From contig OZ176057.1 of NCBI GenBank assembly GCA_964247055.1, forward strand, positions 248,001-312,000: a stretch of 64,000 nt of DNA, in the 5' to 3' direction. A program made the translations under genes and the position numbers. The stretch is from Paragordius varius. Its lineage: Eukaryota > Animalia > Nematomorpha. Under the pieces are notes generated by a model. The model was not told where the DNA came from. It made no database searches and was given only the letters and a program-made list of their open reading frames with translations. This document shows, one piece after another, positions 10,643-42,941 of the stretch; the first letter of the stretch is position 1; every line of letters begins with the position of its first letter.

Positions 10643-11271
10643 ATGAGCCGTCTTACACGCTTTCGTCATGATTGGGATAAATTGGGGAAATTGATATCGA
10701 AGGATAAGATATCTCAATATCAAGCTTTTAAAGCACAGTCAGAAATGAATTTGACCAGGTAGCTTGTTTTTACTAATTTTAGAGTGTTATCATTGCCAGC
10801 CGAGTTACCACGTATCGATTGGTCTCAGTATTCAAAAAATTTAGATCGCGCGTATTTAGAAAAGATGCAAAAAATGGTTTGTTATAAATATATGTAGTAT
10901 GAAAATGCGAAAAGTCAAATTCCTTACCCAAAGGAAAACCTTACTTCAGAAATCAATAAATTAGAAAATGAGAGAGTTTAATTTATTTTTAATATTTAGA
11001 TGGAACAGAGCAAACGTTTTTGCATCGAATCAGAAGCCAGGATAGAGAATGATAAAAAAGAGGTTCAATTCATATGTACATTTAATTTTAGCTTGCGAAA
11101 TGGCAAGATATAATTCCGCTCGAAGATATGTTTGTGGAGGAAGTCTACGACGCTTTTCCTGACCGAACTTATAATGCTTTCGAGCGTCCGACAGTTATTC
11201 CCCACGATTATGGATTTAAACGGCATTTAGCAGACGTTAAACATTTGCATCCAGAACCGTCTGATCACTAA
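10643..11271 (+). CDS. ATP5PD: Mitochondrial ATP synthase subunit d, 5 exons (10643-10758, 10783-10876, 10898-10975, 11000-11062, 11092-11271), 176 aa
   Basis: The spliced product MSRLTRFRHDWDKLGKLIS...LPAELPRIDWSQY...IPYPKE...EARIENDKKELAKWQDIIPLEDMFVEEVYDAFPD matches the conserved subunit-d pattern (DW..., LP..PP.IDW..Y, IP.P, IP...M..E...AFP). The four GT-AG introns are 24, 21, 24 and 29 nt. Confidence 0.92.
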
Positions 11272-20007: not shown

Positions 20008-23000
20008 ATGGCAACCCAGAAGTTTATTTATATAACCACTTTTTATGAACAAATTTTTAAAGTATATCTAAATACAAAGTCAAAAACATTATATTCAGAA
20101 GATGTTTGCAACCACATTTCCCGAGCGCTTGGATTCAAAACAAAATCATTTATTATGTTTGCTCTTTATCTCCCATCTAAAAACATTTTTCTTCCACCCT
20201 CCTTCAATCTAGTCAATAGCAATAATAATTTAAAATTAGACTTCAATGTGAAAATTAATTATAGATTGCGATTTTTACCAGCATCTATTCCACAACTTAT
20301 GGAAAATGATTCATCCGCTTTTAATTATTTGTTCCATCAAATACGATGTGACTTTATTAATTCTCGTATTCCAAATATAAATCTTTTAAAATTATCTGAT
20401 AGCCTTGGTCTGGTTGTTGCCGATATTTGCCGCATGACATTAAACCAATCCTCCAATAATTTTATTGAGAGCATTGATTCAACACAAAAAGATTTTCCTA
20501 AAAATTCACCATTATTACATGATGACATTGCAAATGTTCCAGTTTCCAACAATTCTAATCAGTTATTACGATGTAAACTTAAATCGTCTGCCCTTTTACT
20601 CAATCATCTGGAGACTTATGTGCCAAACGATTATTTAAATTCAGCAAGAGACCGAATCAGATTTGCGGTCTCAGGTCGCCGTGCTTTACGAAGGGCTGTT
20701 AAAGAAAGTTTGCTAGCCCCCAAGATGCCTTCCAAATTCTTTTATGAAGTATTTGATTTATTCCTTCTTATAATATTTCATAGCGGTAATATCTTATTTT
20801 AACATTTATTGCAGACAATTACATTTTAGGGTGATTTTGTGCTCCAGAGCTTTTTAACCACAGTTTTGAAGGTTGTTTTAGTAAAATTTTTATTAGTAAA
20901 CATTGTTCTATGGTATAATATAAAACATTTTTGAAAAAACATGACATTATTAGTGAACGCAAGTGTCCTGCGAACATTATTTATACAATCCAATACCGCA
21001 TGATATGTACCTAAGTAAAAAGTGGTCATGACCACGTTGATGATAATTGTCTGACTGAATCTGACCGGACTTTTTGGAAACAGCAGTCAACACAACCCTA
21101 GTTGGGGGCAATTCGCTACACAGGAGTGTATGCAAAAAAGAAAGGAATCATTGATTACACTAGACAACAAATTTTTCTGCCACTCGAGTTTTTTGCATTT
21201 TTTGATATTTATATCATTTTAACAGTGAATCTGAAATAAAAATTATAACTCGTTGGAAGAATTTTGTATAATTTGATTTTTTAGTTATGCGCCCTCTTTA
21301 TCAAAATTTTACTAAAAAGTGTTTTTCTTTGAAAATATACAAGTAATGCCCATTTGTAATATATCATTCGAAAGAGTATTTAAAACTCTATAAAATGTAT
21401 ACTAATATGTATTACATCGACAGTTAATATTGGACACAAAGAGCGACAAACGCGCGAAGCGAGAGCATTTTTCTTAATTATTATATTTTTAAAACTAATG
21501 GATGAAAATAGCTCAAACTTTGTTTAGATGGAGATGAATGTCTAAAAAAGATAACACAAGAAAGTTTTTTTTATTTAAACATTTTTTATTGCTTTTATGT
21601 CATTCAAAACAGCCTTTTTAAGTTTTTTGTTTTTTAAAAATTACCATCTCATTAATATTAATTAATTTTTTTTACAAGGCTGAGAATTTCGGAAATTTAA
21701 AGATAAAAACAAAGTTTAAGGTATTTTTGATCTTTTATAGCCATTATGTAATAAATTCACAGTTTTAACTATGCATTTTAGTATCCACTAGGTAAAATAT
21801 TTATGATAATAATAATTTTTATTAAAAAAGCAAACCAAAAGCTTTTCCAAACATTTTTAAAATTAAATACTAATATAACCCTAATAATTATATTAAAATA
21901 ATTTATATGATTTTCAAATTAGTTTGTCTGTGAAAAATTTGACTTATTTAAGGATTGAAAATTTTGACCATTTAAATCCAAATAACTTTTACATCCGATT
22001 GATTTAAATGACTTATTACCATTTAAAAGATGCAATTTTTTGCGCTCTTTCGAATGATATAAAATACATGGATTCATATCTAAAACTTTAAATTTTTGAA
22101 ATTTCGAGTTTAATGTTAAATCGGGGCCAGAAATTATCGATAAACTCTAATATAAAAAAATTCTTCCATGTAAGACCAATTTTCTTTTCAGATATACTAA
22201 TTATATACTTTAATGAAATAAATTACAAGAATGGCAGTTAAAAAAAGTTAAAATTTGTTGTCTAGTGTTATTCAACATTTTATTATATCTTACTATACAC
22301 TGCTGTTGAATTGCATATTTCCCTACTATAGTGTCAAATTCTATCCTTGTAAAAAGTTCAAATATATAAAGGATATTTCTTTTAATGCCCCAAGCTCGGT
22401 ACCTAGTTTGAAATGGGGAAATTATTATGATTAAATACAAATATTTTTTAATCAATAAAAAACGTAATATTTAGTTACTTCATTTTATAACACATTTAAC
22501 CAAAGTCTTTTATTTCAACTTAAATAATTTATAATGCACAATTATCTCCAAGTATAAGGTGTATTTTATTTAACACAAGTATAGATGTAAATATATATAT
22601 ATATATATATATGAACCTTAAATATTGGATTTTAACACGTTAAGATTTACAAAATTACAAAAGCGGTTGTATTCAAAATTTTAATCTTGAAGTTACGTTC
22701 AACTGTTTTGATTTTTAAAGTTTCTTATAATATACCATTTTTCAACCAAACGCAACTTTTTTTTATTTGTTTTTGAAAACTTTGCGTTTGACCGAAAAAT
22801 GGTAAAGTACAAACTATGGGAAAACGTTATAGCCAAATAAAAAACACCTGTTATTTATTTCCATTTATTTCTTTGGTTGGCAATATTTTTCGTATTCTGA
22901 ATATTGACTCTTTTTAAATTACTGTATTAAAGAAAAAGCAAAGATAGCGCCAAGTTTTGACACGCTATAAATCGATTTCCATAAAAAATTGATTTCAATT

Positions 23001-26000
23001 TTATATTCCTCTAAAAGAGATTTATATAACATTTAACTTATATTCCATTTACGAGGCTTAATTTATTCTTGAGCCTTCGAATTCACCACCATAAAATAGA
23101 TTGTGTGTTTTTGTTCACTTTAAGATGAAATATTTGGAAACATTGTTGCCACTCCCGACCTATAACAATGAATCATATGATTGCTCAATATCTGGTCATG
23201 CTCTTTTGCAGATGTCACGTGATATCACAGGGTCGCCCTTTGTTGGCCAATCAACGATGGAACGAACTGTTGCAAACAGTTGTGTGCCTGGTCGAATATG
23301 CTTAAACTTACCCACTCCTCCTATAGCACAGTAAAAATTAAAAATTATACAAAGAAAATCTGAAAACTTAAAGATAAATATTATATACAAAAAAAAGGAT
23401 ATTTTAATAGGAATATAACTTTTAACCTAATTATATATAATTTAAAATTAAAAAATGGGAAAAATCTAGTTTGTCTGTTTAATATATTTGCTCCTAAATT
23501 TATACGTTTTATTTTTCGATATAGTGGTAATCGCAATAGCAAGGAATCAAAATACGAATATTGCTTAATGTTTCAACCATTATCATCCGCTTTGAAATCT
23601 GGAACGAGCTTAAGAAGACGTCGAGTGCCTAAAAGAAAGTCTTTGCGGGTAAGTTTATAAATTTTTTAAACTTTGTAGAGTTTTTTCAAGATTTTACATT
23701 TTATTTTATTTCCTTATTTATATAAAACAGCATTATGTTTTTAAATATACCATTTACACCTTAAGTTCCAGCTTCACAATCCAAATTGATCCTAAAAACA
23801 GAATCTGGGCCAAATTTATGGCTATTTTAAACTAATTCATTTTACAAAATATCCAAAGATAGAGATAATTCATGATATTCGAAACTTAATTTATTTTAGC
23901 GTGATTTGCGAATATCGACCCTTCCATATAATAAAAACTATTTTATATAAACTTTATTATATTGAATCAATAGAAACAAAATTTTGTTCTGAATCGCAAA
24001 AAGGCCAGTTCTCAAAGCAAATCAATATTACGTGCCACCAACTCTAAAGGCCTTAGTAATGATGCTAAAAATATCTGTGAGAAGAATGGCATTCTGATTT
24101 GTGCCCTATCTGAGCTTTCTTTCATATCTATTCACAGCGAAACGGTGGCCGAAATTTCGAGAAAAACTGGAATTCCTTTGGTAAACCCAAGATTTAATTT
24201 CAATATTATTTGTTAAGGGTAATAATAATCGTGTAAAATAAATGTATAGTTTTATATCAACAGTCAATCTAATGTAAAATCGATTTGCTTATAAAACCTT
24301 TTCATAGTTTGTAGATTTAAACTCCATTATTCACATCCTAAATTTTTAAGTTTTATCTTTTAATAATATTTCATACACTGCCTAAAATCGGGTAGTATAA
24401 AATGATTTTATCAGGATTTTTTTGGTGTTTTTGCTTTTGAATAACGAGTGATATAAATTTACATTTTTGTGGCAATTGGTCCATATCAAAAAATCGCAAA
24501 ATTAAGGTACTTGCTAATTAAATTTTTTATGGAGAAAGTTAAAATCTTCATATATTAAAATATCTAATAAAACCTAATTCCATTTGATTTTCTTGTATTA
24601 AATTAAATTTGATATAGACCCCTCTAGTCCTAAAATAATCGAAAAAATACTGAGATCAGATCGCACGATAACAATTTGTAATATGTACATTATGATATCA
24701 AACAAGTTATTGTTTGAAATAAGCATAATTTGTTCCAAATTTAATAATTACCTTAAAGCATATTTGATGGTATCTAAGTAATAGTACTTTTTTATATATA
24801 TGATGATGCTGAATATTTAAATTAACTCATGTTTTAAAGATTTGCTCGTTAGTAAAAATTAAGTTTAAAATATATACTTATATTAAAGCAGTTATATTTT
24901 AATTAAAAGAGTTTCTTCCATGCTTTAAAAAATTTCGGGATTTTGCTAAAATATTTATCCAAAATCAAAAATATTTTTTTTGATGTCATAATCTTGTTTC
25001 ACTACAGCGCAATCTCGGCATATATGCATTTTTTAAGAAGTCTAAAGGGCATAAAAATTTGAGACTTTTTTTTCAATTCAACAATATTATTTGATCATAA
25101 CTCATCAGTTCTATGTAATTAATAACCTAGAAAATTTGTATTTCTTAATTATACATTTCTGAATAATTTAAAGTTGATAATGTTATAAAAGTTTGGTTAA
25201 TCAAGAGAATAGGTTAAAAATGATAAAAGAAATGGATGATACACGGTTTGATTGATAAAAAACAAATTAAAAAAGTCGAAGGACCAACTTCAATTGTTCA
25301 ACTCTTTAAATGCAAATGTATACTTTTTTTGTGGATTGTATGTGGTTAATACATCTCTTTAGCACCAAAAAAATTTATTTATTCGAATGTGCGCTAATTT
25401 TGAATTTTTTTATATGGATTAATCATTATAAAGTGTAAATATTTGTTTTAGTAGAATTGAAAGCACTATGCAAATTCTGATACATTTATCCATTCATATT
25501 ATAATTATTTCATTAGATCATTTTTTATGTTCACTCTATATATTTGAAACTTTAAAGTGACATGATGAAAGGATATTAGATTTCAAAAGTGTTATTTTGC
25601 GTCAAACTCACTTTCTCGCTTAGCGTTTGAATTTATCCTGATTGAAATTATTAGGATACAACGTAAATATATAAAGACAAATTTCTTTTTCTAAAAGACA
25701 AAAACCTTAATTTTTAAATTACAGTATGATACATTTATTGCTTGAGTTATCAATTATATCTTTATTTCCTATACTATACTTTGAAACAATAATTTATCGT
25801 TATAAAAATTAAAATTCAAAAAGTATGGTTGTCTTGAAAAAAAATTTGACCTTATTATATTTTTAGGTTTTGTCCGTATAATTTTAATGTTTATTGTACT
25901 TATCTTTTAGTATTTTGGAAAGAGCTCCCCTCGTATGTTTTAACAATAGCTAACTTACTATTAATTGATTCCAAATATATTGGTTAATCTTTTTGTATGT

Positions 26001-29000
26001 AGACTGTCACGTTCAATACAAATCTAGCCATGTTATCGTTCATAAGTCTATTAGATGGATATTATCGATTAAGTCAACGATTTTCTTTCAATCTTTGCAC
26101 GCTAGTTTATTCTCCTACTCTGCTCAAACTCAAATCTCTGGCTTCTCACGGACCTGTTGGGTAAAAATTCATTTTTTCAGCAATTAAAAAATTAACAATA
26201 ATAAAACAACCTTAACGTTTCTGCATAAACTATCAAATAACAATCTTAAACTATATAATTAGGTTTATTAACAATTTTTATCGCTATTCCCTGTTTCTTT
26301 GCGACCCAAAAAGATGTTATAAATAAGAAACATGGAATTTTTGCATTCTTCAAAACTAAAGTTATTTAATCATTATTTAAATGGCGCTTCAAATTATTTA
26401 CATATATTATAATTTTGACAGTTACTGTTAAAATAGAAATTATCTTAATAAATCTTAAAATCATAAAGGCAGGTATTTTTTAAAACACAACCAACCATAT
26501 CCAAAAAGTCCAAAAAAACTATTTAATTGAATTACCAATTTACATTCCCCTTACTTTTGTAATCCATAATAACGATATGAAAAATCAAGTTTTATAATAA
26601 TAAGGATGATAATATTTGTCTTTTTTCCCTTGTGGTGTAATTTCAATTTTTATTGTTAATAACGGAATGATTAAAAATTTAACAGTGATGAATTCGTGGA
26701 ATTGAAATTTCGTGAAAAGTTACAACAAGCCATGGCACAAACTGGCTGTCAAATCAAATCACTCACCGGTTCCTACCTATTGAGGCAATCGGCTTATTCT
26801 TACAATCGATTTCTACTCGATGTCCTATTCATTGAGGACCGAGGTTTAATTAATAATTATTCGAAATACAATAAAAATTATACAGAAATACAATTAAACA
26901 CCGCTATATCTGGGCATATCAAAATCTTTAAAAAAAATTTAAATTATACGGATAAAACATTAAAATATGACATATTTATTAAAACCATACTTTTTTAATC
27001 TTAATTTTTCTAAATATAACTTATGGTTTTAAATTATTTAGTATAATATAAAAAAAATTTGTGACACAAGCAATTATGCATTATATGATTGTAATAAAAT
27101 GTTTTTTATAAGATAAAGTAAGGTATGGTTGTCTTTTAGAAAAAAATATTTGTCTTATATTTTTAATTTTTTTTTCGTATAATTTCAATTTTTACTGTAT
27201 TTTTCTTATCACAATTTCCATGTTATAAAAAATATATATCTATATTCTTTATTTGCAACTCAAATTCATAAGTCATATATAAGAAATTATCATTTGAAAT
27301 ACAGTAACAATAGAAATTATCACATAAACAATTAAAAAACTCTTGAAACTATTTAATTACAATTTTTAACCATATAATTGATTGATAAATTTACATCTGC
27401 ATTTTAAATTTGCTCCTCAAAACAAATTAAGTATATCTAAATAATAAGAAAAATATATTGGTTTTTTGAAAAAAAATATTTTTTTATATTTATAAGTGTT
27501 GTATGTATAATTTTATTTAGAAAATATACCATTTTCAAACTCAGTCTTAAACAATACAGATCACCCTTAAATAATTCAGATCTACCCTTGAACAATTCAA
27601 ATTCACCCTAAAAATAAATTATATGTTTTCTATATCTCATAATTAATATAATATATCTTTGTGTCATAGTTTATTATTTCGTATTAATTTACTTTTAAAC
27701 GAAATTTCATTTTTACAAAATATAAAAAAATAAATGTAATTTTTAATTTCAAGAAACATAAGTATTTTTAGGGTTAAAATGTGCAAGGGTAATATTGAAT
27801 TGTCCGGAGATAAATTTTATTTGTACAAGGGTGATTTGAATTGATTGGTGAATTATAAGTGTAAATGGTATGCATATTATATTATATTTCAAGATCAAAC
27901 TGCGCATCATGATATTCAATACAGGATTCAAACATTTGTCATTCAAGGTAAACTCTATATACATTTTAGTTTATTGACGTATGGCAATAGTTGAATATAA
28001 ATATAAAATATTTTTTATGCTTGGTTTTTGATTTAGACAGTTTTTTATGCCTAAAAGCAAATAGCTAAAATGGCGCTTAAAATATTTAAAATCACAACTT
28101 TCGGACAAAAAAACTTGCTAAATTAAAGAAACATGCGCCTTTTTCTTACAAATTATCAAAAAATGTCTTTTAAGGCTTAAACCATTTAATGCGATATACA
28201 TGGATATGATTTATATAAATATTACTTTCATTGTTTTAAATTGCCAAGTAGAGATAAATGAGATGTAAATTGGTAAATACACACAACTATATATTCTTAC
28301 GATTGTGTAGTTAAAAAGTTTATTAAGGCAAAAAATATAGGTTTGGAAATATGTGGTTGTTCTTTAAATAAAATATTTGCTTTCGTCTTATACTTTAATA
28401 CAAAAATAATATATCTCGTATATATGATAATTATATTGGCCTACCAAAACACGTAATTAATATTTAGGTTAATATTAGGTATTAATGATATATATTTTAT
28501 TTATGTTTTATTGTTTAGAAAATTATAATGACGAACCCATACAACTCTTAAATAGCATCGAAACGTCAACGTATGTTATTAAAACAAACCAAACAGATTT
28601 TAACTATCCTTCCTCGCCCCAAAACCCTATGATTAAATTATTACAAATACCACAATCTAATGCCTATTGGACATTTCTTGGTGAGAAACATGATAATGTC
28701 AATGATAATAAGTTTTTACCATACCAACAACATATGAGCATCAGATATGCCAACTTACGAGCCCTGTTGAAGGCTTACTCGAATGATGGGGGGGAGGAGG
28801 AGGGAATTCCTTTCACTTATCCTGCCAAATGTATTCCGCCCTCTGATTATGATTTAGCTCCTGAACTCTTGCTGTGTAATCGATACTTGTTTGACTTGAG
28901 TGAAAAAACGAATTATCGAACGAAAAGTTTAACATTCAACAGTGATGAAAGATTGGCTCAATATGCCACGTTGCAAATTGCTCTTAAACAAATACTCGAT

Positions 29001-32000
29001 CCAGCTGGTCTCATTGGAAATAATTCGTTTTCGGCCGGAAATTCCTTAAACCATTCTGGAAATGGAAATGAAAATAATGAGTTTGAACCATCCATCATCA
29101 ACCAATCCCACAAAAACTCTCTAGTAGGCTGCGATAATTATCAACAATACCAACTCATAAAAGCGGCCCCTCTACTCTTTATAGCTTTTGCGGATTTGGA
29201 ATTATTTTTTTCTTTTTCCTCTCATGATAATAAACATAAACAAAAGTTTTGCAATAAGCCACAACAACATTTGGTGGAAACGAAGCCACCAATAACTATG
29301 CAAAACTCCCATTTAAATGATAAAACAGGGCATTCCAATTTTAATGATAAATCCGATAAAGTTTTGGAAACTCTAAATCCAAATCCTGACCTAAACAACA
29401 AAGTTGAATATCATGATGTTTTAAGTAGTGAAGAAATGTATAATTCTCTGAGCTCCCGTCCAACTATCAATCGAACACCAAATTTATTTTCTGGACAAAC
29501 CTTAATGACCAAAAAATTAAGTTTTTCTTTATTTAAATATATGTGAATTATTTTCATATTCACCCTTGAACAATTCAAATTCACCCTTAAAAAATCAATT
29601 ATGTGTTTTCATATAATATAACTCATATTAATATAAAATAATCTTTATGGGATAGTTTATTATTATTTTAGTTTTAAAAAATTTCATTTTGAGAAATATA
29701 TTAAAATACAGGTATTTTAATTATAAAAAAAATTTATATGAGGGTGAATTTAAATTGTAAAATGTTATAAAAACCATTAATACTCTAAGAGTGTCCCTTA
29801 ACACTTCCAGTTATCCTTTAACATTTCAAGTGGGTCCTTTATATTTGTTAAGTATGCTATAATTATCTATTTTTTTTATTTTATTTGTTTTTTTCTTCCA
29901 TGAATAACATTTTTCATTTTTTAAAAAAATCTATTTTTGTTTCGAATTTATTTTTTTCCAATTAGTCAATATAAACATGATATATTAAATAAAATTTGTA
30001 ATAGATAACCACCTTATATTTTTAATTAATTAAAACTATAATATTAAATAAAAAATTTAAATATTATTGAAAAAGTATTAAATACGGTTTTTGAATGAAA
30101 AGTTGGTATATTTTAAAAATTTAGGTTAATTAAAGAAAATAGGTTAATATTTGGGAAATGAATTAATCCATGGTAATTAATATGACTTAGAATCAAAATA
30201 TAAATTTAAAAGACAAAGGACATTTTTGATGTCCAAATGGTATATATTTTATTTAAAAACCATTTATATTAGTTAGGAAACAAAAAACTAAAAGACAAAT
30301 AATTTTTTCTAAAGATTTTTAAATTCGATTCTAAATGTTTTTTAAACTCCTCAATTTGTGTCGCAAAATATATGGAATAAGGATGTAATTTCCTCACTTA
30401 ATTATATAATTCAAATTTCTTAATTGTATTATAAAAAAATAAGGTTGGAAAAGGTACTGTTGTCTTTTTTTGAAAAAGTTTTTATGTTAATAAATTATAT
30501 TTTTACTAATTTTTCTCTTACACTCTAAGGATTAATTGATGGAGAATTCAATACTTGTAATACTTTGAATGGGCGATCCTCACTTATGGCTAGTGGGATT
30601 TGGCACCGAGATAAATATTACAAAATCCCTATTTCGTTTAAAACCATAATCACTTCTTCTTTAAATAAAACAAGGTAGCTATTTTAAACTCATTTCAATA
30701 TTTTGAATAAAAGCTGTTTTTTTGAATAATTAGAAACCCTTAAAGTCTTACTTTGACAGCGTTTTATCACAGTAAAATTTGGAAATATTGTAAAAAGTAA
30801 AAACTCATAGATACATATTTCAAGACACCCCCATACTTTTTTAAACTTTGATTTTTTTCGTACATAAACATTATAAATACACTATTATAGAATATAATTC
30901 AGTGTTCAATACCAATTTACATGTCTTGTCCTTATTTTACAATCCAAAACGATAACTAATACAGTAAAAATTGAAATTATACTGACAAAATGTAAAAATA
31001 TAAATACATTTTTTTAAAAAACAATCATACTTTTAAACCTTCATTTATCCTATAAAAAACATTTTACAACCTTAAAATGCATATTTGATTGTGTTATCAA
31101 TTTACGTTTCTATTTAAATTTGTAGTTTGAAACAATTAGTTATATATAAATAAATCAACATTAAAAAGTATGGTTTGTTTTTTGAAAAAAAAAATTTGTA
31201 TTTATATAAGTTTTGTCCATATATTACCGTATATAAACAAGTTTTTAAGAGTGGTTGTTTTTTATTGAAACATACTTGTCTCTATCTTTTTATATATAAA
31301 CTATACCTAGACCTATTGATTCGGAAGAAATGACGACTGTAACATTCTTGAAAGCATTAAACAAATTTGCATTTATTTCGGATCCCACTCTTGTCAAAAT
31401 ATATGGCGTATGCTTGGATCCATTGTTGGTAAAAATACACTTTGTATTAAGCTTTACTATTTTATTAGTTTTAATGTATTTATAAAAATTGCTATTCACC
31501 CTCGAACAATAAATAAATTATATGTTTTTTAGATTGAAATTTTCCTATATTTTTATATATTTTTGAAAAATAAAATTTTGTTTTTAATAAAAAAATAATT
31601 TTGAAAATATAATAAACTATGCCATAAAGATATATTTCATAATAATGATTTATATTAGTTCAAATACACATAATTTATTTTTAGGGTGAATTGAATTGTT
31701 CAAGGGCGAATTTGAACTGTAAATGTATACAAAAAAATTATAAAAAAAATATTTTTTGAAAAGACAATAATATTAATTGAATTTTTATAAAAAAATATAA
31801 CTCATCACATGGGGATTTATAGAATTATACTTTTACAATATAATAATTGTGTATTTTATAATAATCAAGGTTCGATAAAATAATAGCAATCTTTTAAAGA
31901 GTATTTTTAATTGATGTTTATGTTTTATCTGAAATTTTAAATTTTAAATTTACTTAATTATTAAAAGTATTAAAAAAAAAGGAATAACTTCGTTTGATTG

Positions 32001-32218
32001 ATAGATTATAACAGAAGAGTTGGAACTTGGTTCTTGGGCAACATTTTTGCGTTCATCTGCAGCAGCTGTTAAGGAAGAAAGAGTTGATGTGTGTTGTATA
32101 TTGGAGGCCGGGGCGACCATTTCACGAGCCCTGTGGTTTTTGCATGAGAAAGCTCTCACACACAATCGCATTGGAGCTGTCAATGTTTACGTCAAACTAA
32201 AAAGTTTAACAATATTCC

Positions 32219-32259
<41 letters not shown>

Positions 32260-35200
32260 TATTTGTTGAACTTAATTTTTATAGTAAAGGATAATAAGGT
32301 CTTAACTATATATTCGACAATACCATCATTCATTAGTAAATCAAAAATGTTAATGTTTTTTCCTGCAGTATTGAGCCCAGATACGATTTTGTATTTAATT
32401 AGATGCGCTTATTTCAAAAGATTTATTGACTTAAATTAAGCAACTAATTAATAGATATAATGAGACTATAAGAAGATTCGCTTTAGAGCCACATTATTTT
32501 TATAATTATTAATGCTTACTTTGAAAGTTGACCAATTTGCCTTAAAAATAGTTAATATACATCCATAGAATAACTTATAACATAACTTCATAGCCACCTA
32601 ACTTTAAAATGGTGGCGAATAAAACATCCTACTTTTAAATTTTCTCTCTTTATACATGACTTTATACATGTTTTTTTTTAAAAAGGTTTCAAGTTGCCCA
32701 TTTTTATATGGTAAATTTTGAAGAAGATGGTATTTTAATCAGCAGCCATTATTTAAAAAAAGTATTAGGCTAATACACTGCCTTCAGATGAGAAATTGGT
32801 AAACCCTTACTAAGTGATTCACTGGTAATTAGGTTTGAAACAATATTTTGTATGGTGGTTACCATTGTAAAATAGCGATCAACAAAATTGCCTTTATACG
32901 GGAATAACTTAAACTATTGAATGATTTTAAACAGTCGCTAATAGTTGAAAATGTTTCAAAAATTTTCTTATGTTTTACTGCAAAAAATGGCATTTTATGC
33001 GGGTTGGCGATACAGGGGCCGAGAATTTACATTAGGTAATCAATTTTATTACTGAATTTGTATGGGCTCATTCATTAATTTGAAATCATAATGGTTTTTT
33101 TGGGGCATTTTTTGTATTTTTTTTAGAGCCAACATTTAATTTTTATAATTTAATTTTTTTCCTGATTTAAATATTATTTATCAATCAATTTTACTAGAAC
33201 GGACGCCTACAGAACCAAATCATAAATTTGAAGATAACTGCCACCAAGGTTTGTTTGTCTCTTTTTATCACTTTAATATTAGTAATTTTGATATATACGG
33301 CTTGTTACAAGCGGGCAGTATATTGATTGTTAAAAAATTTTTTCTTTATATAATTTATTTATGACGGATGATTTTAAATGCACAAAAACAACACTAAAAT
33401 TATTGATGATTTTAGATTTAGAGAGGGCATTCCCGGAAAATTGGACTGTCAAACTTTGTGATCCAGTTCTTTCGATAAATCCGTTTGAGGCTTATTGTAC
33501 AAATTTTACTTCTCAACCTGCTAACCTCACCAATGGTTTTGGAAGCCTAGATGAAGGCCTCAATAAATTATACGCAATCTGCCCACATCACGCCTTATTC
33601 AAGTTTGTTTTCTCTATTAATTTACATATAGTTTAAAATTTTAACAAATACAGCATTGAAACATACAAAATGTAAAACATAAAGACAATAAAAAAACCTC
33701 CCGATACTTTTTTAACCATGTTATTTTTAAAAATATAACTAGCTGATTTAAACTGCAATGTATAAGTTGATAACAGAATCAATTATAAATTTTAAAATTG
33801 ATTGGTAATGATTTTTATGGGAAGAAATAGGATTAAATGCATAATTTTGTCTTTTATAATTTTATTTTATACAATATAATTTAATCTCCGTTTTAAATCA
33901 TTCATGTCAGATTACCTTGGTTAAGTCCCGAACTCTTTTGCTGCAGCGAGAATGATGGAGGAACCGCTACAAAGCACAACCAATATTTAACCGATAAACT
34001 TCCCTCATTATTAAAAAATTCAATTATTAATAAACAGATCAATCCAATCTCAATCTTAGACTCAATAAGTAATGATGAAGGGTATGATATTTGGTCTTTC
34101 GGTACATTCTTGTGGGAAAGTCTTATGTATGCTTCGGTTAACCCATTGAGTGCTTTATGCTTATCTGGCAGCTCTCAGTTTTCCATTAAATCCGCTTATC
34201 GAAATTTACTAAACTCGTTACAAAAAACCACTGATGATAATAGTATTATAAATCCAAAGGATAATCCTGGAGTTTCTGATGATGTTGTTAATATCTCACT
34301 TGGTGGGACGGAAAATAATAGCTCAAAAAATGTTTTTGAAACCAAAATTGAAAAAGAAGCCAACATGTTATTGTCAGTTTTATTATCAAACATTATTCAT
34401 CATGGTAATATATTTCATAGTTTTTATAAGAAAAAAATTAAAATTATCCTTCTAACCGTCATAATTTAAAATAAAAAGTTAAAATATACAGTATATATAT
34501 TATTGTTCAAATTTTTAAAACTTTATAATCTTTTTTTTAACTCTCAAAGTATTACAGTAAAAAATAAAATTATATGGACAAAACGTTAAAAAATAAAGAC
34601 AAATTTTTTTTTCAATCTATACTTTTTAAGATTCATTTTTGTAAAGATACTTCGATTGCATTATTGAATTGATATCTATGTTGGTGACACAATAAATTAT
34701 ATACTTTATAATATACTTTATATGAAAATAATTAAGGTTTAAAAAAGTATGGTAGTCTTTTAGAAAAAATATTTGTGTTTAAATTTTTTTTGTCGTATAA
34801 ATTATTTTACTGTAATGATGGAAATTGGTAACTCTCAATTATATATTTCAAAATTGTAATTATATGTTTTATGTAGGAAATATGAGGGATGATTATATCG
34901 CTGTCATTTGATGAAAAAGATTCTTAAATTTTTTTTTATGTTTTGTCCGTATATGTTTTATTGCATATTTAACTATTCTATCTTTTAACCATCAGAAGTT
35001 AGATTACCCAAACCCACAAATTGTCCTGATCGCTTATATTCTCTCCTTTTGCAATGTTGGCAACGCGACAAAGATCACAGAATACGCATTCATGAATTGG
35101 TAATTGCTTATAATTTATAAATCATTATTTACAAAAGTGTTGGAAATATATATAGATAAAATACAAATCAGTAAAAATTTTAACTATTACCAGAACGGTT

Positions 35201-38200
35201 TTTGGACTCGGTTATCGTTGAAAAACAGTTCTTTTTTAAAATCGACCGCCTTTTTATATTTTATCCGGAATCGGGTAGAATATATTTGGTTCAACTTTTT
35301 CGAAAAATAATTAGTTTTTTACATTAGTCAATCTAAAACTGTCTGCGTAGAAATATTTTTAGGCTAATGTAAATGGGCGAAAAGTGAAATAAATATATAT
35401 ATACTATATTAAATATTCATTATATAATAAATTGTTTTCGTTTTTGATATTCAAGGTTCGAGATACACATCAAATTTTCTATTCTCTCTTGCATACGCGC
35501 GAAAAACGAAAACAATTTTCTCAACTCCAGCTAAAAACTAAAGCTCAACATAGCGATCAAACAAATCCTCCTACTTTAGAAAAAACTCTTTTCAAGAGTA
35601 ATACTATTAGCAATGGTCAAATCTCTCATCCGTCTAATTTTAGAGTTCCCCAACACGTTAGAATCAATCATCATTGTTTCTCTAACAATTCTAAGTCAAA
35701 ACTACCCAATGTGAACAAATCTGAACATACAATTTTAGATTCTGCTGTTCCTGCTTTAAAACCCTTAAATGAAAACTCTTCAGTTAAGCAAACCCCTTTT
35801 AAGAACCAGGCTTCTGAGATTGGGATTGGGTCAGATGGATATGTGGATCATGAAACATTAAAATCCCCCCTTTCTACTTTTCATGAATGCCGCCTTAATG
35901 AAAGTTTATACTTGCCCACTGATGTTGAAAGTCTTTATAGTATTACATTGAACGAGGATATCAATGATACTGATAAACCAAATGATATGGTCGTGAATTC
36001 AAACACGAAAACTAAACCGACTCTTAACAATTTTAATGGTAAGAGTTTCGATTGTATTAACACACACTCGTATTTTAAAAATGTTTTTACTGGAATCTAT
36101 TCTTTAATCATAAAATGTTTCCAAATTGTATAAAGTATTTAAATGGGTCGATATGATAAAAATGGTTTCAGTATTTAATAGTCATATCTCTTAAGCATTA
36201 ATTTGATAGGGTCGAATCGAAAATAAATAGATTAAACATTATTATAATAAAGGTTTTTATATTTTATAGTCGATTCATATAAAATTTTAAGTATTTTTTT
36301 CCTTTTTTAGATACCCTGAAAAGGCGCCCTTTCGATCCCCAGTCTCTGCAATACGATATGAGTTGTACGAACACCAATTCGCCTAACATCGATACTAAGT
36401 AATCAATTGCTAATTTTTATTGATATTTCTCATTGTTCACGTGAAATCTTTTTATTGCTATAAATAAATGCTTTTTTATTAATTTTAAAATTGAGTATTA
36501 GAAACCTATGTAAAAAAATTATCAATAATACAACACTCCATGTCTCTATTTGGGGCCTTAAATGCTAATAGATAAATATTTGATTATTATTTAAACATTT
36601 ATATATCTAATAATTTATAGAAACGTAACCCATGAATCCGCCTCCCTGAGACAGTTAGAAAATAAAGAAAAAAACGATTTTTCCACCATTGCACCGCATG
36701 TCAACGGTCATATCTATTCAATGACAATGAATAATCTAGTCTCTGTTGAGGAGGAGGGACGATTAAATAAAGATTCATTCGAACTCAAAAGTCATATCAC
36801 ACGAACGCCCTTACCTCCTGTACCTCAAAAGATGCGTAAAATTCCTGCACCTCTCAAAAAAAACCCACGATTCCCAAGGTCCAACAAAATTTGGCGACAA
36901 TTTAGACAACACATTTTATCTACCATTTTGAAAAGACATAGTCAGCGCGACACATCGTCGCAACGAAAAAATGTTTTAATGGCGTCTGATGGAAAATCTT
37001 ACATTAGGCTTTTGCCACAAGACGCCTCTTCTCCTTCGTCTACTTTGGGCGATATTAAGGAAACCACAAAACCAAAATGGTTGTTAAGAAAAAAATTTCG
37101 TTTTCGTTCAAATTCTTACTCCGGACTTACGTGTATCGGTCATCCACATTCGCAAACCTATTTGCTTGGAAATAGCAATTACAACAATAATCCTTATTAT
37201 TATTCATATAACAATTTTGGCAATTGTTTTGAACATGTTCCAATGATACCCCAGATTTCTGCAACTATAGGTAATGATTCTCACATGAATGGACTGAGAC
37301 GAAGTTCTTCCTCTTATACTATTTCATTGTCTATCAACAACCAACAAAATGACAAAAACTCAGCCTATGCTTTTACCATTTCAGAAACCCAAATTCGCTA
37401 CATTAAATCCTTGGGGGAGATGGTAAGAATAATTTTTATTTTCCTTATTAATTTGCTTGTTTTAATTTATTTGCTTTTTCGAACACTTTATTCAATTTTA
37501 TAATATATTTATTTATTATATACCGGTTTTATGAATATTTAAAAGTGTTTTAAAAGGATCCTTATGTTGACGTCCTGGTTATATTAGGATTAAAATACGC
37601 TAGAATATCATTATAAAAATATTATTATATAATCTATTATCTAAATACCTCATAATTAGAGCGATTTAAGAAAATATATAACAAAAAACTGGAACGTAAT
37701 CAAAGGATTATATTGTTGGATATAATTTTATTTAATACTTGGTAGAACAAAAATGGAGATGATACTTGGTTAGCTATCTGGACGAAATTCAATGATCTTT
37801 TTTGTCAAAAAGTAGTTATTAAACAATTCAACATACAACAATCCCCTCCATTCGTTAATAATTTTAACGATAATAATCGAGAAATTACATCTTTCAAATC
37901 ACAATCAATTCAAAAAAATTATGCATTACTTTCACCTTTATTTCAAGTTATTTTACCAAAACTCATTCTGAATCCACATCCAAACATTGCACACATTAAG
38001 GTTATATTTATAATTTGGTTATATAAAAAAAAATTGAACTTATACAGATAAAATGTAAAAACTTATAAATAAATTGTTTAATAAGGGAGCCATGATTTTT
38101 TCCACTTTAAATATTTATTTCATTACATTTTTGATATAAAATTAAGATTAATATTTAAGGGCTTATTTTGGACTTAAAAACGATTTTAAAAAAAAGCTTT

Positions 38201-39998
38201 ATTGATTTTAAAAAATATTTCTTTATGGTTTTAGATCTTGTCTGTAAAATATTACTGCATGTTTCTTTATTTCGCATTCAAAAATCTAGTCCTCGTCGAA
38301 AATCAATGTATAAAATTTTGTTGTTTTCGATCTTCTCTAATATTTATATTTACCTCGCTCTGGATATTTTATATTATTCACCCTTAAAATTTCATAATTT
38401 ATAAATTTTTATTTTTGAAAATTATTTTTAAACAAATATAATATAGGAAAAATTAACGTGTCGTAAATATCTCATATCTTTATTGATAACTTAAATTGGT
38501 TTTCCAGAAAGATTTTTTCAGGGTTAATCGAAGTGTAAATAATTTTCCAGTATATGTTACATTAAATTCATTTTTTATGCACCCCACAGGGCATTTTATC
38601 GTTCCATGATGAAAATGATGTCTTACCTTCAGATTCTTATAAAAAGGAGGAAAGAATGCCTATATCATATACAACTAGTAACAACATGTTAAATAATGCT
38701 AACAATTTGGTTACAATCAAACAAAAATATGTTATGGAGTATTTGGAGATGGGAACTTTGTCCAATTATTTGCAAATGAATGGGCCTGACATAACTTTGC
38801 GACAAAAAATGATTTACATGAAAGATATTGCCAGAGTATAATCCTTTCTTTACATATTTGTTAAATTATTTTACGCGCGTTTCTTCTCTCTTTAAAGTTC
38901 AGTAAAGACAAATTTAAAAGACAATCATACTCAGCGGTTTTTTTGAAAAAGAATATTTGTCTATGTTTTTACCTTTTGTTTATCTATAATTTCACTTTTT
39001 ACTGTAATTTACACCGCGTATATTCATTACATTTATTATGAAAATAGGGCATGGCCTTCTTATACGATGAATTGGGAATAGTTCATGGAGATCTGAAGGC
39101 TTGTCACATACTTATGACGAATGAAGGCAAGACAGTTAAAATTGCTCATTTTGGGAGAAAGTGTCGAAATGCTATGCAGAGCAACGATTGTATAGACAAA
39201 TCAAATAAGGGCCAACCCAACGATGAAAATGACATTGTGTTATCCGATTTGGCTTGGATGGCACCCGAATTATTTAAAGTAAGGGGTACTATAATCAATA
39301 ATTTTTATTTTTTAGGATTCGTAAAACTAAATAAAACCGCTTAATTAGGACAGGAACGCAATCAGTACAAAATCGGATGTATGGTCTTTTGGGAGCGTTT
39401 GTTGGGAAATTTTAACAAATTCTAGCATATCTCTTTCACAAGCCATGTTTTCCATCTTACAAAGCTCTCTCGAAATGCAGAATTCGAAATCATCGAGAAC
39501 GTTAAACGATAAACCCCGCCATTCATATATCAATGAGGAAATCTTAACACCCTCACAAACTAAATCAATCATTTCTCAATATTATAATGATTTAATCAAC
39601 GGGAGTGATCATAATAACCCCAAAATACGTAAGTTTACATTCTACAGAGTTTAATATATAATCCTTCTAAATATTTACTATATTTGGTTTTTCAATTATT
39701 AGAATCTGCTCTTCCTTTATCCAACAAGGAACAAGTGATCGTACTAATGGAACAACTAGTAATAACTTTTATTTAACGCAATTTAATTACATATAACATT
39801 AAATATTTATCTTGTTAAAATGTTTGATTTCTGTAATCATAGATAAAGGATGGTTGGAGATTACCACTCCCCGAGTTTTGTCCCTCATATCTAGGCGAGT
39901 ATATTAAAGATACATTGTGGACTTTCAACCAACATTCTCGTCCTTTCTTTCACCAAATTTTACAAAAATTTTCTCTCCTTTTGCAACCTAATATTTAA
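20008..39998 (+). CDS. JAK: Janus kinase-like protein (FERM-SH2-JH2 pseudokinase-JH1), multi-exon
   Basis: FERM: YRLRFLP, FNYLFHQIRCDF, MLSFISLLDGYYRLS..LC..HGP. SH2: GSYLLRQS, KCIPP..LLLC. JH2: LVKIYGVC, LHEKALTHNR, VKLCDP, LPWLSPE, DIWSFGTFLWE. JH1: VVIKQ, HPNI, VMEYLEMGTL..YL, HGDLKACHIL, KIAHFG, WMAPE, SDVWSFG, RLPLPEFCP. Stop at 39996-39998. Exon phases were consistent where checked. Confidence 0.9.
21160..22010. repeat. Dispersed repeat of about 0.6-0.9 kb (probable non-autonomous DNA transposon) in a JAK intron; second copy at about 51530-52120
   Basis: Shared blocks include tttttctgcca...gttttttgcatttt and attggacac...gcgacaaacgcgcgaagcgagagc. Boundaries are approximate. Confidence 0.7.
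22591..22612. repeat. (TA)n microsatellite
   Basis: Direct reading of the sequence. Confidence 0.9.
32220..32254. repeat. (TA)n microsatellite in a JAK intron
   Basis: Direct reading of the sequence. Confidence 0.9.
34555..34812. mobile_element. MITE family 1 copy
   Basis: TA|CAGTAAAAAATAAAATTATATGGAC...TTATTTTACTG|TA. Confidence 0.8.
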
Positions 39999-41727
39999 AT
40001 TTTGCTACGATTATTCTACATCTATGCACATTTTATTTTTTAAACTTAAATGCAATGAATGGAAATTGCTCAATCAACCCTTAAACAAAAACCGTTTAAT
40101 TTTTTATCATAGTCATATTTATGAAAAATATATCAATAATTTTATATAAAATTTTTATTATAGATTGCGATTATATATATTTTAATTATTATATAATAAA
40201 TTAACGATATAAGATTTATGGGTTTTAGTTCAGTATTTTTAAAATTATAATTCGTGGCTTCCTAACTAACATGTTGATGTTACAGTTATTGAAATCGAAA
40301 ACGTAAAAGCAAAAGTTTTTTAAAAATTCCATATTTTTTTAAACCTTAATATGTTTCACATCAACTATTTAGTTACAACTTTGAATTATAAAATTGGGTT
40401 TATTATTAGTCAATTTGTATCTTTAGTCCCCGTTTCGTAACCTGAAACGATAATTTAAATTAAAAATATGGTTTTAAAAAATATTTGTCGTATATTTTAT
40501 ACTTTTATCTGGGAAATTTTAATATTGGTTGATTTGGTTTGGATATAAGTGTAAGAATTTAGAGTGTTGAGACTTGCGCAAGCGTTTATTATAGTCAGTA
40601 AATATTTTAAAATTATTATTTTATTAAATACATTAAAAATTAAAATTATACAGACAAAATGTAAGCATATAAAGACAAATATTTTGTATTAAAAATAATC
40701 TTACTTTTTTATATCATGATTTATTTAAATAGAACTTAATATTGAAAAATATGAAGGTGACATCTATATTGGTTTGATTGATTATATATTCTTCAATTGT
40801 AATTATATAATTTATATAAGAAAAATAAAGGTTTATAAAAATATGGTTTTTATAAAAAAATATTCTTTATATTTTTACGTTTTGTCCTTATATTTTCAGT
40901 TTTTACTGTTTTTGCGACCGATTAAAATTTTTAGTGGGTACAACTGCTCCATATGTTGCTTATGATTTCCGATTTTTTAAAAATATTAATCATTGTTGTA
41001 TATAACAAAATATGAACAGAAAATCGTAATCAATTATTTTATATATTTTATAATTTTTAAATATATGTGGGAAAAATCAGGATTCCATTATATCTTTACG
41101 TTTTGTCTCTATACTTTCGATTCTACTATTTTATTTGACACTATTTAGTGTTATAAGGAAATGTATTAACCTTGTCGAAATGTAATTAATATCCTCTATA
41201 AACCTGCTATATAAGAATATTGTCTTATCCAATATGTTTTAAATTTTAAATAAATCGATTCATATCTCCTAAAGTTGTTGACTTAAGACACCAGAATCAG
41301 TGCTAAAATGGCTTTTGAGAAAGTGATGCTTAAAATAAGCCATATCATGAATATTTATTTAATTTTTGTTTAGACGATTTAATATATCGATGAATTTTAT
41401 CATTAACTATAGATTTAAAAAAGGTAAAAATTTTATATAAAGAATGTTTTGGACCTAAAATGACTTTAACTATCAATAAGAAAAATATAAAATAGTAAAA
41501 AATATATAAAAAGTAATTATGAAGCCGATATTTTATTGGGCATATAATGACTCATGCGCTGTTGAATATTGGATCGATATGAAAACATCAAAAGACTAGG
41601 TATACAAATCAATAATTTTATAATAATATTTCAGTCTACAACCGTTTCCACAGCAAATAAAGATGGCGAATCTTTCAACAAAACTTTTGGATTATTTATT
41701 TGGTTGAGTTAATTTAAAGCTGATAAT

Positions 41728-42941
41728 TTACGCATGAATTTGTAAATTAAGTTTTTTGAAATGGCGAAAGATAGGATCATTGGGATAAAATAACTCAAAA
41801 TCAGACTTATAATATGAAATTATATTCCATAAAACTTTTTTTGGGATTGATGAAAGCATAATTATATCTCTTTCATATAGTTTTTTGCGGTTATGCAAAA
41901 ACGTTTCAATGTTCGTGAAACGCTTAAAAGCATCAAATCTCAGATGATTCCAACCCGCCAAGGCGAGCAATGCATTGTAATCTTGCAAAAATGTCTCATG
42001 TTTTCCAATATAATCATACTGAATGCGGCAAACATCACAAAGATCCGAATATGGCGCCCAATGTTCGTTAGTTAAGAGTTCATATTGATAATGTTTGTTT
42101 GAACAAGCTTTGAACAATTTTAAATGAGAAACGTAAGTGGCGAATTCGACAAAAGATATATTTGGAGGCGTTTTAAGCTGCTGTGAAGGTTTTTTATACA
42201 GTAAAGACCTCATATTTAAGGCACATCGTTTTCTGTGTGGTAACAAACTAATTTTCTCCCCATACAAGTGTAGAAATTTTATGACAGAGGCATAGTGTCT
42301 GGAGATATCGAACGATCTTCTGCTTCCTGTGCCAAATTTACTTCTGTAAGCCGAAAGAAATCGCGTTAAAGGGTTTCTAACCATTATGAAATGAAAATAT
42401 GAATTGTTGGACATCCTCGTATCCTTTTGTAAAGGATGACCATTTTTAAATGAATGATTATTATGGGACAATGTTATATATTTAGCTGAAGATATAGCAC
42501 TTCCCACACTAATGTTACGTTTCAGACTTTGTTGAATGAGAGGGATGTACTTGGGTTCATTTGCGATTAATACGTAAGCCTTTAACAAAGTCGACGAGCT
42601 TTTTGGAACGTAACAAAATATATTTTTGTATTTTTCATCGACAATCAAATGATTTTTGGATGTAGATGAACTGAAGTTTTCCATAACCAAATTATTATTA
42701 TTACTCTGACATTTTACAGCAAGTTGATTCAATCTAATTCTGTTGTTATCTTTTAAATATTCTTTTGTGCGAGAATAATCTAGATTACAATAAATACAAT
42801 GTATATCGCTCTAAATAAGACCAATGTGATTGAAAAAATACTACTTCTAGAATGCACGATAAAAACAAAAGCCACGATTCCGTATCCCAATAAAATAATT
42901 ACAGTTTTGATGGTTTGTTTTAAAGGATTACAAAACAACAT
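41728..42941 (-). CDS. Carbohydrate sulfotransferase (Sulfotransfer_2 / CHST8-14, HNK-1ST family), type II membrane protein
   Basis: 5'-PSB CYVPKSSST, 3'-PB VRNPLTRFLSAYRSKF, HWAPY..LC.VC.I.YDYIGKHET and C-terminal YKSDFELF. A short upstream exon from ATG 42941 encodes MLFCNPLKQTIKTVIILLGYGIVAFVFIV (signal anchor). The exact first-intron donor is uncertain. Confidence 0.9.

Follow-up and report, generated by a model that had tools for sequence, protein, structure and literature searches.

A gene of about 20 kb, at 20008-39998 on the plus strand of the 64,000-nucleotide stretch of Paragordius varius DNA analysed here (contig OZ176057.1, positions 248,001 to 312,000; hereafter the window, whose coordinates are used throughout), encodes a predicted Janus kinase (JAK) in which the C-terminal kinase domain, JH1, appears to have lost its catalytic machinery. 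Since this domain reads GEMNKNG in the glycine-rich loop, HGDLKACH in the catalytic loop, HFG in the place of DFG, and D-C or D-Y in the activation loop, the gene would be a JAK by descent and architecture, yet atypical as an enzyme. I put at about 0.58 the probability that JH1 is a non-catalytic pseudokinase selected for and maintained as such, and that the JAK serves as a scaffold bound to receptors. That JH1 is inactive, that the protein is a scaffold and that the gene is expressed are what I infer from the sequence.

Catalytic motifs of the JH1 domain

Seven JH1 exon pieces, starting at 37366, join in frame across six GT-AG introns to give 1281 nt, or 426 codons, closed by a TAA stop at 39996-39998. 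I assembled this exon model manually, following GT-AG sites and the continuity of the frame. The first piece (37366-37422, donor ATG/GTAAGA) encodes beta1 and the first half of the glycine-rich loop, LGEM. An intron separates it from exon B (37746-38000), identified from the spliced frame and the alignment with other JAKs, which opens with the rest of the loop, NKNGDDT, and contains the beta3 Lys (VVIKQ, 37812-37826), the alphaC Glu (REI) and HPNIAHIK. The beta4-beta5 insert, the hinge (VMEYLEMG) and alphaD-alphaE are encoded by exon C (38590-38835; Pfam PK_Tyr 0.0015; 43% identity to residues 1783-1819 of the JAK of another nematomorph, Gordionus, described below). Exon D (39048-39278; Pkinase 6e-6, PK_Tyr 4e-5; 50% identity to the GMDYL..HRDLSARN..SDFG stretch of Gordionus) carries the catalytic loop HGDLKACH, encoded by CAT GGA GAT CTG AAG GCT TGT CAC at 39084-39107, followed by HFG, encoded by CAT TTT GGG at 39147-39155, the activation segment and WMAPE (39255-39269). 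SDVWSFG (39373-39393), in alphaF, and a variable insert lie in exon E (39349-39628; PK_Tyr 1.7e-6; donor AC/GTAAGT). The frame is then restored by exon F, of 56 nt (39703-39758), and the last exon (39843-39998; PK_Tyr 0.009; 44% identity to Gordionus 2508-2546) supplies the C-terminal JAK-like motif LIKDGWRLPLPEFCP and the HSRP Arg before the stop codon.

A catalytically competent JH1 has GxGxxG, HRDLAARN, DFG and an activation-loop YY pair, and each of these is altered in P. varius. Both Mg2+ ligands are replaced by His, namely the catalytic-loop Asn and the DFG Asp. The ATP-phosphate clamp is degraded from GxGxxG to GEMNKNG, two of the three loop glycines being gone, residues being inserted and two Asp following. 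The HRD Arg has become Gly, the tyrosine-kinase signature AAR has become KAC, and the regulatory YY pair is reduced to D-C or D-Y. By sequence, a pseudokinase is defined as lacking at least one of the beta3 Lys, the HRD Asp and the DFG Asp (PMC13519141, PMC4718504); JH1, with His at 39147-39149 in the position of the DFG Asp, falls within that definition. Residues that hold the kinase fold together are kept, that is the beta3 Lys, the alphaC Glu, the His and Asp of HxD, the APE Glu, the alphaF Asp within SDVWSFG, the alphaH-alphaI Arg and the RLPxP motif of JAKs.

A first-pass annotation of the window, made from the letters alone, had reported HGDLKACH and HFG, and both are borne out by the DNA, the spliced frame and public contigs. 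Its LGEMNKNG loop also stands, in spliced form, with the intron between LGEM (up to 37422) and NKNG (from 37746), and the beta3 Lys, catalytic Asp, WMAPE and SDVWSFG that it listed as kept are all in place. It was mistaken in finding no evident alphaC Glu: this residue is the Glu of REI in NNREITSFK (37872-37898), which lines up with FEREINIMK in other JAKs. Its description of an activation loop devoid of Tyr holds for the allele in the window, where 39189-39191 is TGT (Cys), and fails for a second allele found in reads, where the same codon, aligned with the second Tyr of the YY pair, is TAT (Tyr).

Architecture and family membership

The predicted protein has the order JAK-type FERM, SH2-like domain, JH2, long linker and JH1; boundaries of exons upstream of 37366 were set at the level of high-scoring segment pairs (HSPs) and are approximate. 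Exon 1 (20008-20748, donor GAA/GTATTT at 20748/20749) contains the start codon and the FERM F1 and F2 lobes, with FERM_F1 (PF18379) scoring 8.3e-7, above the Pfam cut-off, and FERM_F2 (PF18377) 8.3e-4, below it; against the Gordionus JAK the exon gives a tblastn value of 1e-25. The F3 lobe is covered by approximate exons at 23119-23196, 24025-24183 and 26012-26161, which are colinear HSPs to Gordionus residues 294-444, the last 60% identical. The SH2-like exon, at about 26720-26875, is recognised by a weak SH2_1 match (26675-26995) of 0.0066 that, at 17.3 bits against a cut-off of 27, lies below threshold; MAFFT places it on the SH2 region of other JAKs, and the SH2 of the Gordionus orthologue scores 4.3e-5 in Pfam. 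A conserved block between SH2 and JH2 (28740-28949) matches Gordionus 688-752 in tblastn.

JH2 is spread over exons at 30580-30648, 31348-31431, 32005-32211, ~33403-33501, ~33903-34157, 35001-35102 and 35456-35506, which form colinear HSPs to Gordionus 849-1171, up to 61% identical, with weak PK_Tyr matches on the exon frames 32005-32436 and 33897-34466. Its catalytic loop is THNRIGAVN (32158-32184), that is HNR...N, and DPV stands in the place of DFG (KLCDPV, 33451-33468), in agreement with the first-pass description of a normal JH2 pseudokinase marked by HNR and DP. Between JH2 and JH1 the gene model places a low-complexity linker of ~500 aa (35507-37365; open frames 35393-36130 and 36595-37500), which has no Pfam domain and whose inner exon boundaries are approximate. 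From exon C to the last exon, JH1 gives PK_Tyr or Pkinase matches, and it aligns across 289 columns with 14 JAK JH1 domains, RLPxP motif included.

Database searches place the gene in the JAK family. In the PDB, the FERM exon matched the FERM-SH2 regions of TYK2 and JAK2 and nothing else. Being short and divergent, exon D by itself drew weak generic kinase matches (HRI, KIT), none of them a JAK. An exhaustive HMMER search of 1.84 billion representative sequences with the FERM exon returned 59 matches, and the ten that were looked up were all JAK or hopscotch proteins, from insects, mites, Lingula and Gordionus; the top match was a 2565-aa protein of Gordionus sp. m RMFG-2023 (86 bits, 42% identity). 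A word search of protein libraries with the exon-D open reading frame yielded no candidate, and the closest FERM match in these libraries was 42% identical. The gene is thus evidently an orthologue of the invertebrate JAK of hopscotch/JAK2 type, in a fast-evolving, AT-rich lineage. The JAK identity first proposed for it is upheld by the JAK-type FERM, the SH2-like match, the two kinase-like domains and the nearest relatives, hopscotch and JAK2.

The Gordionus orthologue has a canonical JH1

The nearest relative is Gordionus LOC135923372 (XP_065314148.1 / CAK9291363.1), which in tblastn is colinear with the P. varius gene from 20089 to 39959 and whose protein has matching Pfam domains. The two proteins are grouped with 99-100% support in maximum-likelihood (ML) trees (LG+G4), the JH1 tree giving 99%. 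Three phase-0 intron positions in JH1 are common to both genes: one in the glycine-rich loop (LGE/G in Gordionus, LGEM/N here), one after IK (IK/G) and one before GM(D/A). The first of these lies one codon upstream in Gordionus (LGE/GNFG versus LGEM/NKNG). As the motif-bearing stretches align residue by residue with Gordionus, no tiny in-frame introns are hidden there; the linker and the inserts could harbour such introns.

Despite this kinship, the Gordionus JH1 is canonical, with LGEGNFGEV, VAVKSLK, ENEINIMK, IVHRDLSARN, ISDFG and a Tyr-rich activation loop, and a PDB search with its N-terminal half gives JH1 chains of JAK1, JAK2 and JAK3 (1e-20 to 3e-27), with one EGFR chain marginally ahead. 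HRDL(A/S)xRN is found in 17 of 17 full-length relatives, Gordionus among them, and Gordionus and 13 other aligned JAKs have the canonical GxGxxG, HRDLAxRN, DFG and YY. When columns of a MAFFT alignment of the P. varius JH1 with 14 JAK JH1 domains were scored for the single sequence that departs from an otherwise near-invariant residue, P. varius was the odd one out in 22 columns, against 0 to 8 for any other. These 22 departures include the loop glycines, HRD Arg to Gly, AAR to KAC, Asn to His, Asp to His, Tyr to Cys, and CW to LW. Where Gordionus has AGG, AAC and GAC, the P. varius codons are GGA, CAC and CAT, and one first-base change in each suffices for the residue change. The degeneration of JH1 is evidently lineage-specific, because the Gordionus orthologue and the other JAKs are canonical.

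Base composition is similar in the two animals, with 26.93% GC for the Gordionus genome (10.1101/2023.06.26.546503), 27.3% for its JAK locus (L001) and 27.2% for the P. varius window, which contains no Ns; the proteins differ in the canonical JH1 of Gordionus, and their identity is 30-46% depending on the domain. The Gordionus JH1 also has giant inserts, one of ~140 aa within the activation loop and one of ~420 aa separating WFAPE from SDVWSFG (residues 1856-2427). They lie within a single uninterrupted exon of 653 codons (L001 29801-31759, 27% GC), and no such insert occurs in the P. varius gene. The low-complexity JH2-JH1 linker of ~500 aa is found in both animals (35393-37365 in P. varius, residues 1171-1688 in Gordionus). 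The linker is short in other JAKs, and one of this length would alter the autoinhibitory geometry between JH2 and JH1.

The excess of change is concentrated in the N-lobe and catalytic segment

The distribution of change along the protein was examined by Tajima-type counts, in which changes unique to P. varius are compared with changes unique to Gordionus as means over 13 outgroups. For JH1 as a whole the ratio was about 46 : 16, with p < 0.014 for each outgroup, compared with 30 : 19 for FERM, 13 : 10 for SH2 and 28 : 12 for JH2. Within JH1, the N-lobe gave 13.3 : 2.7 and the segment from alphaE through the catalytic loop to the activation segment 14.8 : 2.7, while hinge-alphaD-alphaE gave 3.8 : 3.6 and the part from APE to the C-terminus 12.1 : 5.6. 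ML branch lengths for P. varius and Gordionus were 1.76 versus 0.43 in JH1 and 1.09 versus 0.47 in the N-terminal part (FERM-SH2-JH2). The excess is thus concentrated in the N-lobe and the catalytic/activation segment, at ~5:1 relative to Gordionus, the remainder of JH1 changing at the gene-wide rate.

Sequence reads, a second form of the locus and selection

The motif codons were checked in DNA contigs from three public studies; the variants reported here are the best-supported ones, 179 weaker ones having been left out. Contigs of runs X1 and X3, two samples of organism A, are identical to the window over 38805-39089, and a contig of run X6, from the third study, shows 0 differences over 39042-39192. 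No variant among those listed lies between 38787 and 39176. Contigs of all three studies therefore agree at the motif codons, with neither GAT at 39147 nor an Asn codon at 39105 among the listed variants. The Cys/Tyr polymorphism mentioned above is due to G>A at 39190, present at full depth in X1, which changes TGT to TAT at the codon equivalent to JAK2 Y1008. Runs X5 (organism B) and X6 (organism C) also contain low-depth contigs identical to the window, which suggests that they are DNA of the same species (through host-parasite material or labelling, for example) and not conserved sequence of relatives.

A second form of the locus is present in X1, X3 and X5 over 36600-40100. Its depth is similar to that of the window form, it differs by 6-11% in most of the pieces compared, and some introns differ in length, 219 nt being absent between 37428 and 37648, for instance. 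It could be a divergent haplotype or a second JAK copy. Between the two forms, the listed exon indels are +3 at 36940, -3 at 36957, +3 at 37226, -3 at 37918 and +3 at 39566, the exception being +2 at 37251 in a contig whose gaps total 6; those in introns or untranslated regions measure 1, 1, 2, 7 and 11 nt. Of the single-base changes possible in JH1, 5.6% give nonsense, and the frame is nonetheless intact across 426 codons. The listed exon variants affect 12 codons synonymously and 18 non-synonymously, for a rough omega of ~0.39 (p = 0.012 against neutrality), an indicative value drawn from a partial list. All six listed variants in the conserved core of the C-lobe (38784, 38787, 39239, 39375, 39396 and 39420) are synonymous, and the non-synonymous ones cluster in the activation segment and in the insert after alphaF. 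The first-pass annotation had pointed to an intact frame over ~20 kb as a sign of purifying selection; the intact JH1 splice sites and codons, the in-frame exon indels and the overall omega all go in that direction.

A probable maintained pseudokinase and the alternatives

The most probable hypothesis is that in the P. varius lineage JH1 began as a working tyrosine kinase and became a pseudokinase. The first-pass annotation had proposed a tandem double pseudokinase with a role as scaffold or decoy. Receptor docking would persist through FERM-SH2, and dimerisation or scaffolding through JH2 and JH1, while canonical Mg-ATP phosphorylation would no longer be performed; STAT or the receptor, if tyrosine-phosphorylated, would need another kinase, as in nematodes, which have no JAK. 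Several observations weigh against this hypothesis. All three of the catalytic Asp, the beta3 Lys and the alphaC Glu are retained, as they are in CASK. The entire gene, beyond JH1, has evolved faster than in Gordionus, which would fit a gene on its way to loss as well. In the JH1 exons alone, the listed variants give an omega of ~0.46 with p = 0.067, marginal for purifying selection. The piece covering exon B is ~11% different between the two forms, a divergence that fits a weakly constrained N-lobe. Finally, words of the locus were found in none of five runs guessed to be RNA, no listed run being recorded as RNA.

One possibility is that these observations reflect decay in progress: JAK catalysis would be dispensable, as in nematodes, JH1 or the whole gene would be relaxed, and a stop codon or frameshift would merely be yet to come. 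I consider this unlikely and keep it as a minority alternative. It would account for the longer branch gene-wide (1.09 versus 0.47 in FERM-SH2-JH2, 1.76 versus 0.43 in JH1), the raised relative rate of JH2 (28:12), the polymorphic Tyr/Cys codon and the many listed non-synonymous variants in JH1 loops, a divergence of exon B equal to that of introns (~11%), and a locus unseen in the five putative RNA runs; nematodes, with STAT-like genes and without JAK (PMC13203501), offer a precedent. Yet a gene of ~20 kb in 27% GC DNA has all checked JH1 splice sites and all 426 JH1 codons intact, its listed exon indels are in frame when those of its introns are not, and the listed variants yield an omega of ~0.39 overall (p = 0.012). 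Moreover, the fold-critical residues are all kept, the listed variants of the C-lobe core are synonymous only, and the hinge and C-terminal lobe have changed no faster than the gene-wide rate. A further explanation is wholly technical, namely that a canonical catalytic exon is masked by an incorrect splice model or by errors of sequencing or assembly. In its favour, the splice model was derived from genomic sequence. Against it, the motif codons are the same in the window and in contigs of three studies, exon boundaries agree with those of the Gordionus orthologue, and the degenerate motifs align residue by residue with canonical ones. Besides, tblastn with full-length JAK relatives of more than 900 aa and six-frame regular expressions, applied to both strands of the 64 kb, uncovered no alternative exon with a canonical catalytic loop (H.D....N), DFG, APE or SDVWSFG. 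Given the agreement of the contigs, the boundaries shared with Gordionus and the lack of a hidden canonical exon, artefact is largely rejected, and I regard it as highly improbable.

The other biological alternative is an atypical JH1 that is active or binds nucleotide, in which the His pair, the catalytic-loop Lys and nearby Cys (KAC-H, HFGRKC) would bind the ATP phosphates without metal, or through Zn2+ or Mn2+. The outcome could be weak or re-specified catalysis, or a switch that senses metal or pH. Both Mg ligands have been replaced by the same residue through single first-base changes (AAC to CAC, GAC to CAT), with no listed variant at either His codon in either form, and the Ala/Ser of HRDL(A/S) has given way to the Lys that Ser/Thr kinases and CASK have there. 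The catalytic Asp, beta3 Lys and alphaC Glu are retained, CASK is active without cations and without the DFG Asp (PMC4718504), and EphB6, with both metal ligands replaced, binds nucleotide metal-free (PMC7586955). Set against these points is the state of the ATP site: the glycine-rich loop, intact in CASK, is broken (second Gly to Met, inserted residues, two Asp after), the tyrosine-kinase-specific Arg of AAR is gone, and the N-lobe is the fastest-changing part and highly divergent between forms, which is unexpected for a working site. An intact glycine-rich loop and VAIK have been described as the best sequence predictors of activity, CASK included, binding not being safely predictable from sequence (PMC4718504); the best of these predictors, the loop, is the one broken in P. 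varius. An atypical but working domain is hence, in my estimate, slightly less probable than decay. More doubtful still is its most specific version, that the paired His, the new Lys and the flanking Cys form a re-engineered site for Mg2+-free nucleotide binding or for Zn2+ or Mn2+ at the former Mg site; if true, a tyrosine-kinase scaffold would house a switch gated by metal or pH, or a kinase independent of cations.

Other features of the window

The JH1 intron segment 38004-38120, with a core at 38029-38074, shows a 10- to 15-fold rise in read depth, and dozens of contigs end there with unrelated flanks, the mark of a short repeat dispersed in many copies. On the plus strand, one translated motif (…SLYF.FC.YNF.F…) recurs in many open frames of introns (12337-12546, 17075-17251, 17726-17956, 25850-25984, 27112-27225, 31154-31330 and 40729-41145), suggesting a dispersed repeat family, resembling miniature inverted-repeat transposable elements, that extends through the JAK introns. 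Upstream of the JAK gene, the last exon of a gene for mitochondrial ATP synthase subunit d lies at 11092-11268 on the plus strand (Pfam Mt_ATP-synt_D 3.2e-6). Downstream, a single-exon carbohydrate sulfotransferase gene of 334 aa occupies 41728-42732 on the minus strand (Sulfotransfer_2 1.6e-33), its closest database relatives, 27-28% identical, being from scallops and a dragonfly.

Comparison with known systems

The P. varius protein resembles canonical JAKs (Drosophila hopscotch; vertebrate JAK1-3 and TYK2) in its architecture, its FERM F1/F2, the degenerate JH2 loop with DPx, SDVWSFG and RLPxP. It differs from them in the four JH1 motifs, where GxGxxG, HRDLAARN, DFG and YY are replaced by the sequences given at the outset, and in its long linker. 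By definition a JAK has two kinase domains, a dead JH2 and a live JH1. To our knowledge no JAK with a degenerate JH1 is known, and keyword searches of open-access papers returned nothing relevant on JAK in Nematomorpha or on a JAK with a dead JH1. With both kinase domains apparently dead, the P. varius gene would be the first of its kind among JAKs.

Loss of both Mg ligands has a parallel in receptor tyrosine kinases. In EphA10 the DFG Asp is replaced by Gly and the Asn by His793, and in EphB6, which binds nucleotide independently of metal, they are replaced by Arg and Ser, respectively (PMC7586955). These domains are like JH1 in having a tyrosine-kinase fold and neither ligand. They differ in that their glycine-rich loops are essentially intact and their beta3 Lys is lost, whereas in P. 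varius JH1 the loop is broken and the Lys kept.

CASK, too, is without the catalytic-loop Asn. Its calmodulin-kinase (CaM-kinase) domain is without the DFG Asp and works without divalent cations (PMC4718504). A metal-independent kinase of the CASK type has lost its Mg ligands and kept the Lys and an intact glycine-rich loop (PMC4718504); P. varius JH1 shares the first two traits, but its loop is disrupted. Further likenesses to CASK are the conserved beta3 Lys and the Lys in the catalytic loop.

If JH1 is indeed a maintained pseudokinase, the gene would be a natural experiment on the functions left to a JAK once catalysis is gone, namely receptor chaperoning, scaffolding and JH2-JH1 allostery. 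With the excess of change in the N-lobe and the catalytic/activation segment, it would also provide a clean evolutionary case of conversion from kinase to pseudokinase. The JH1 of Gordionus is still canonical, and the change can therefore be dated within the phylum. Nematodes, the sister phylum of Nematomorpha, afford the closest comparison at the level of the pathway. Nematodes carry STAT-like genes but lack a JAK homologue (PMC13203501). In P. varius, by contrast, the JAK is present and in frame, and only its catalytic machinery is degenerate; it may thus represent an intermediate toward the complete loss of JAK, the state of nematodes, which lost JAK and kept their STATs.

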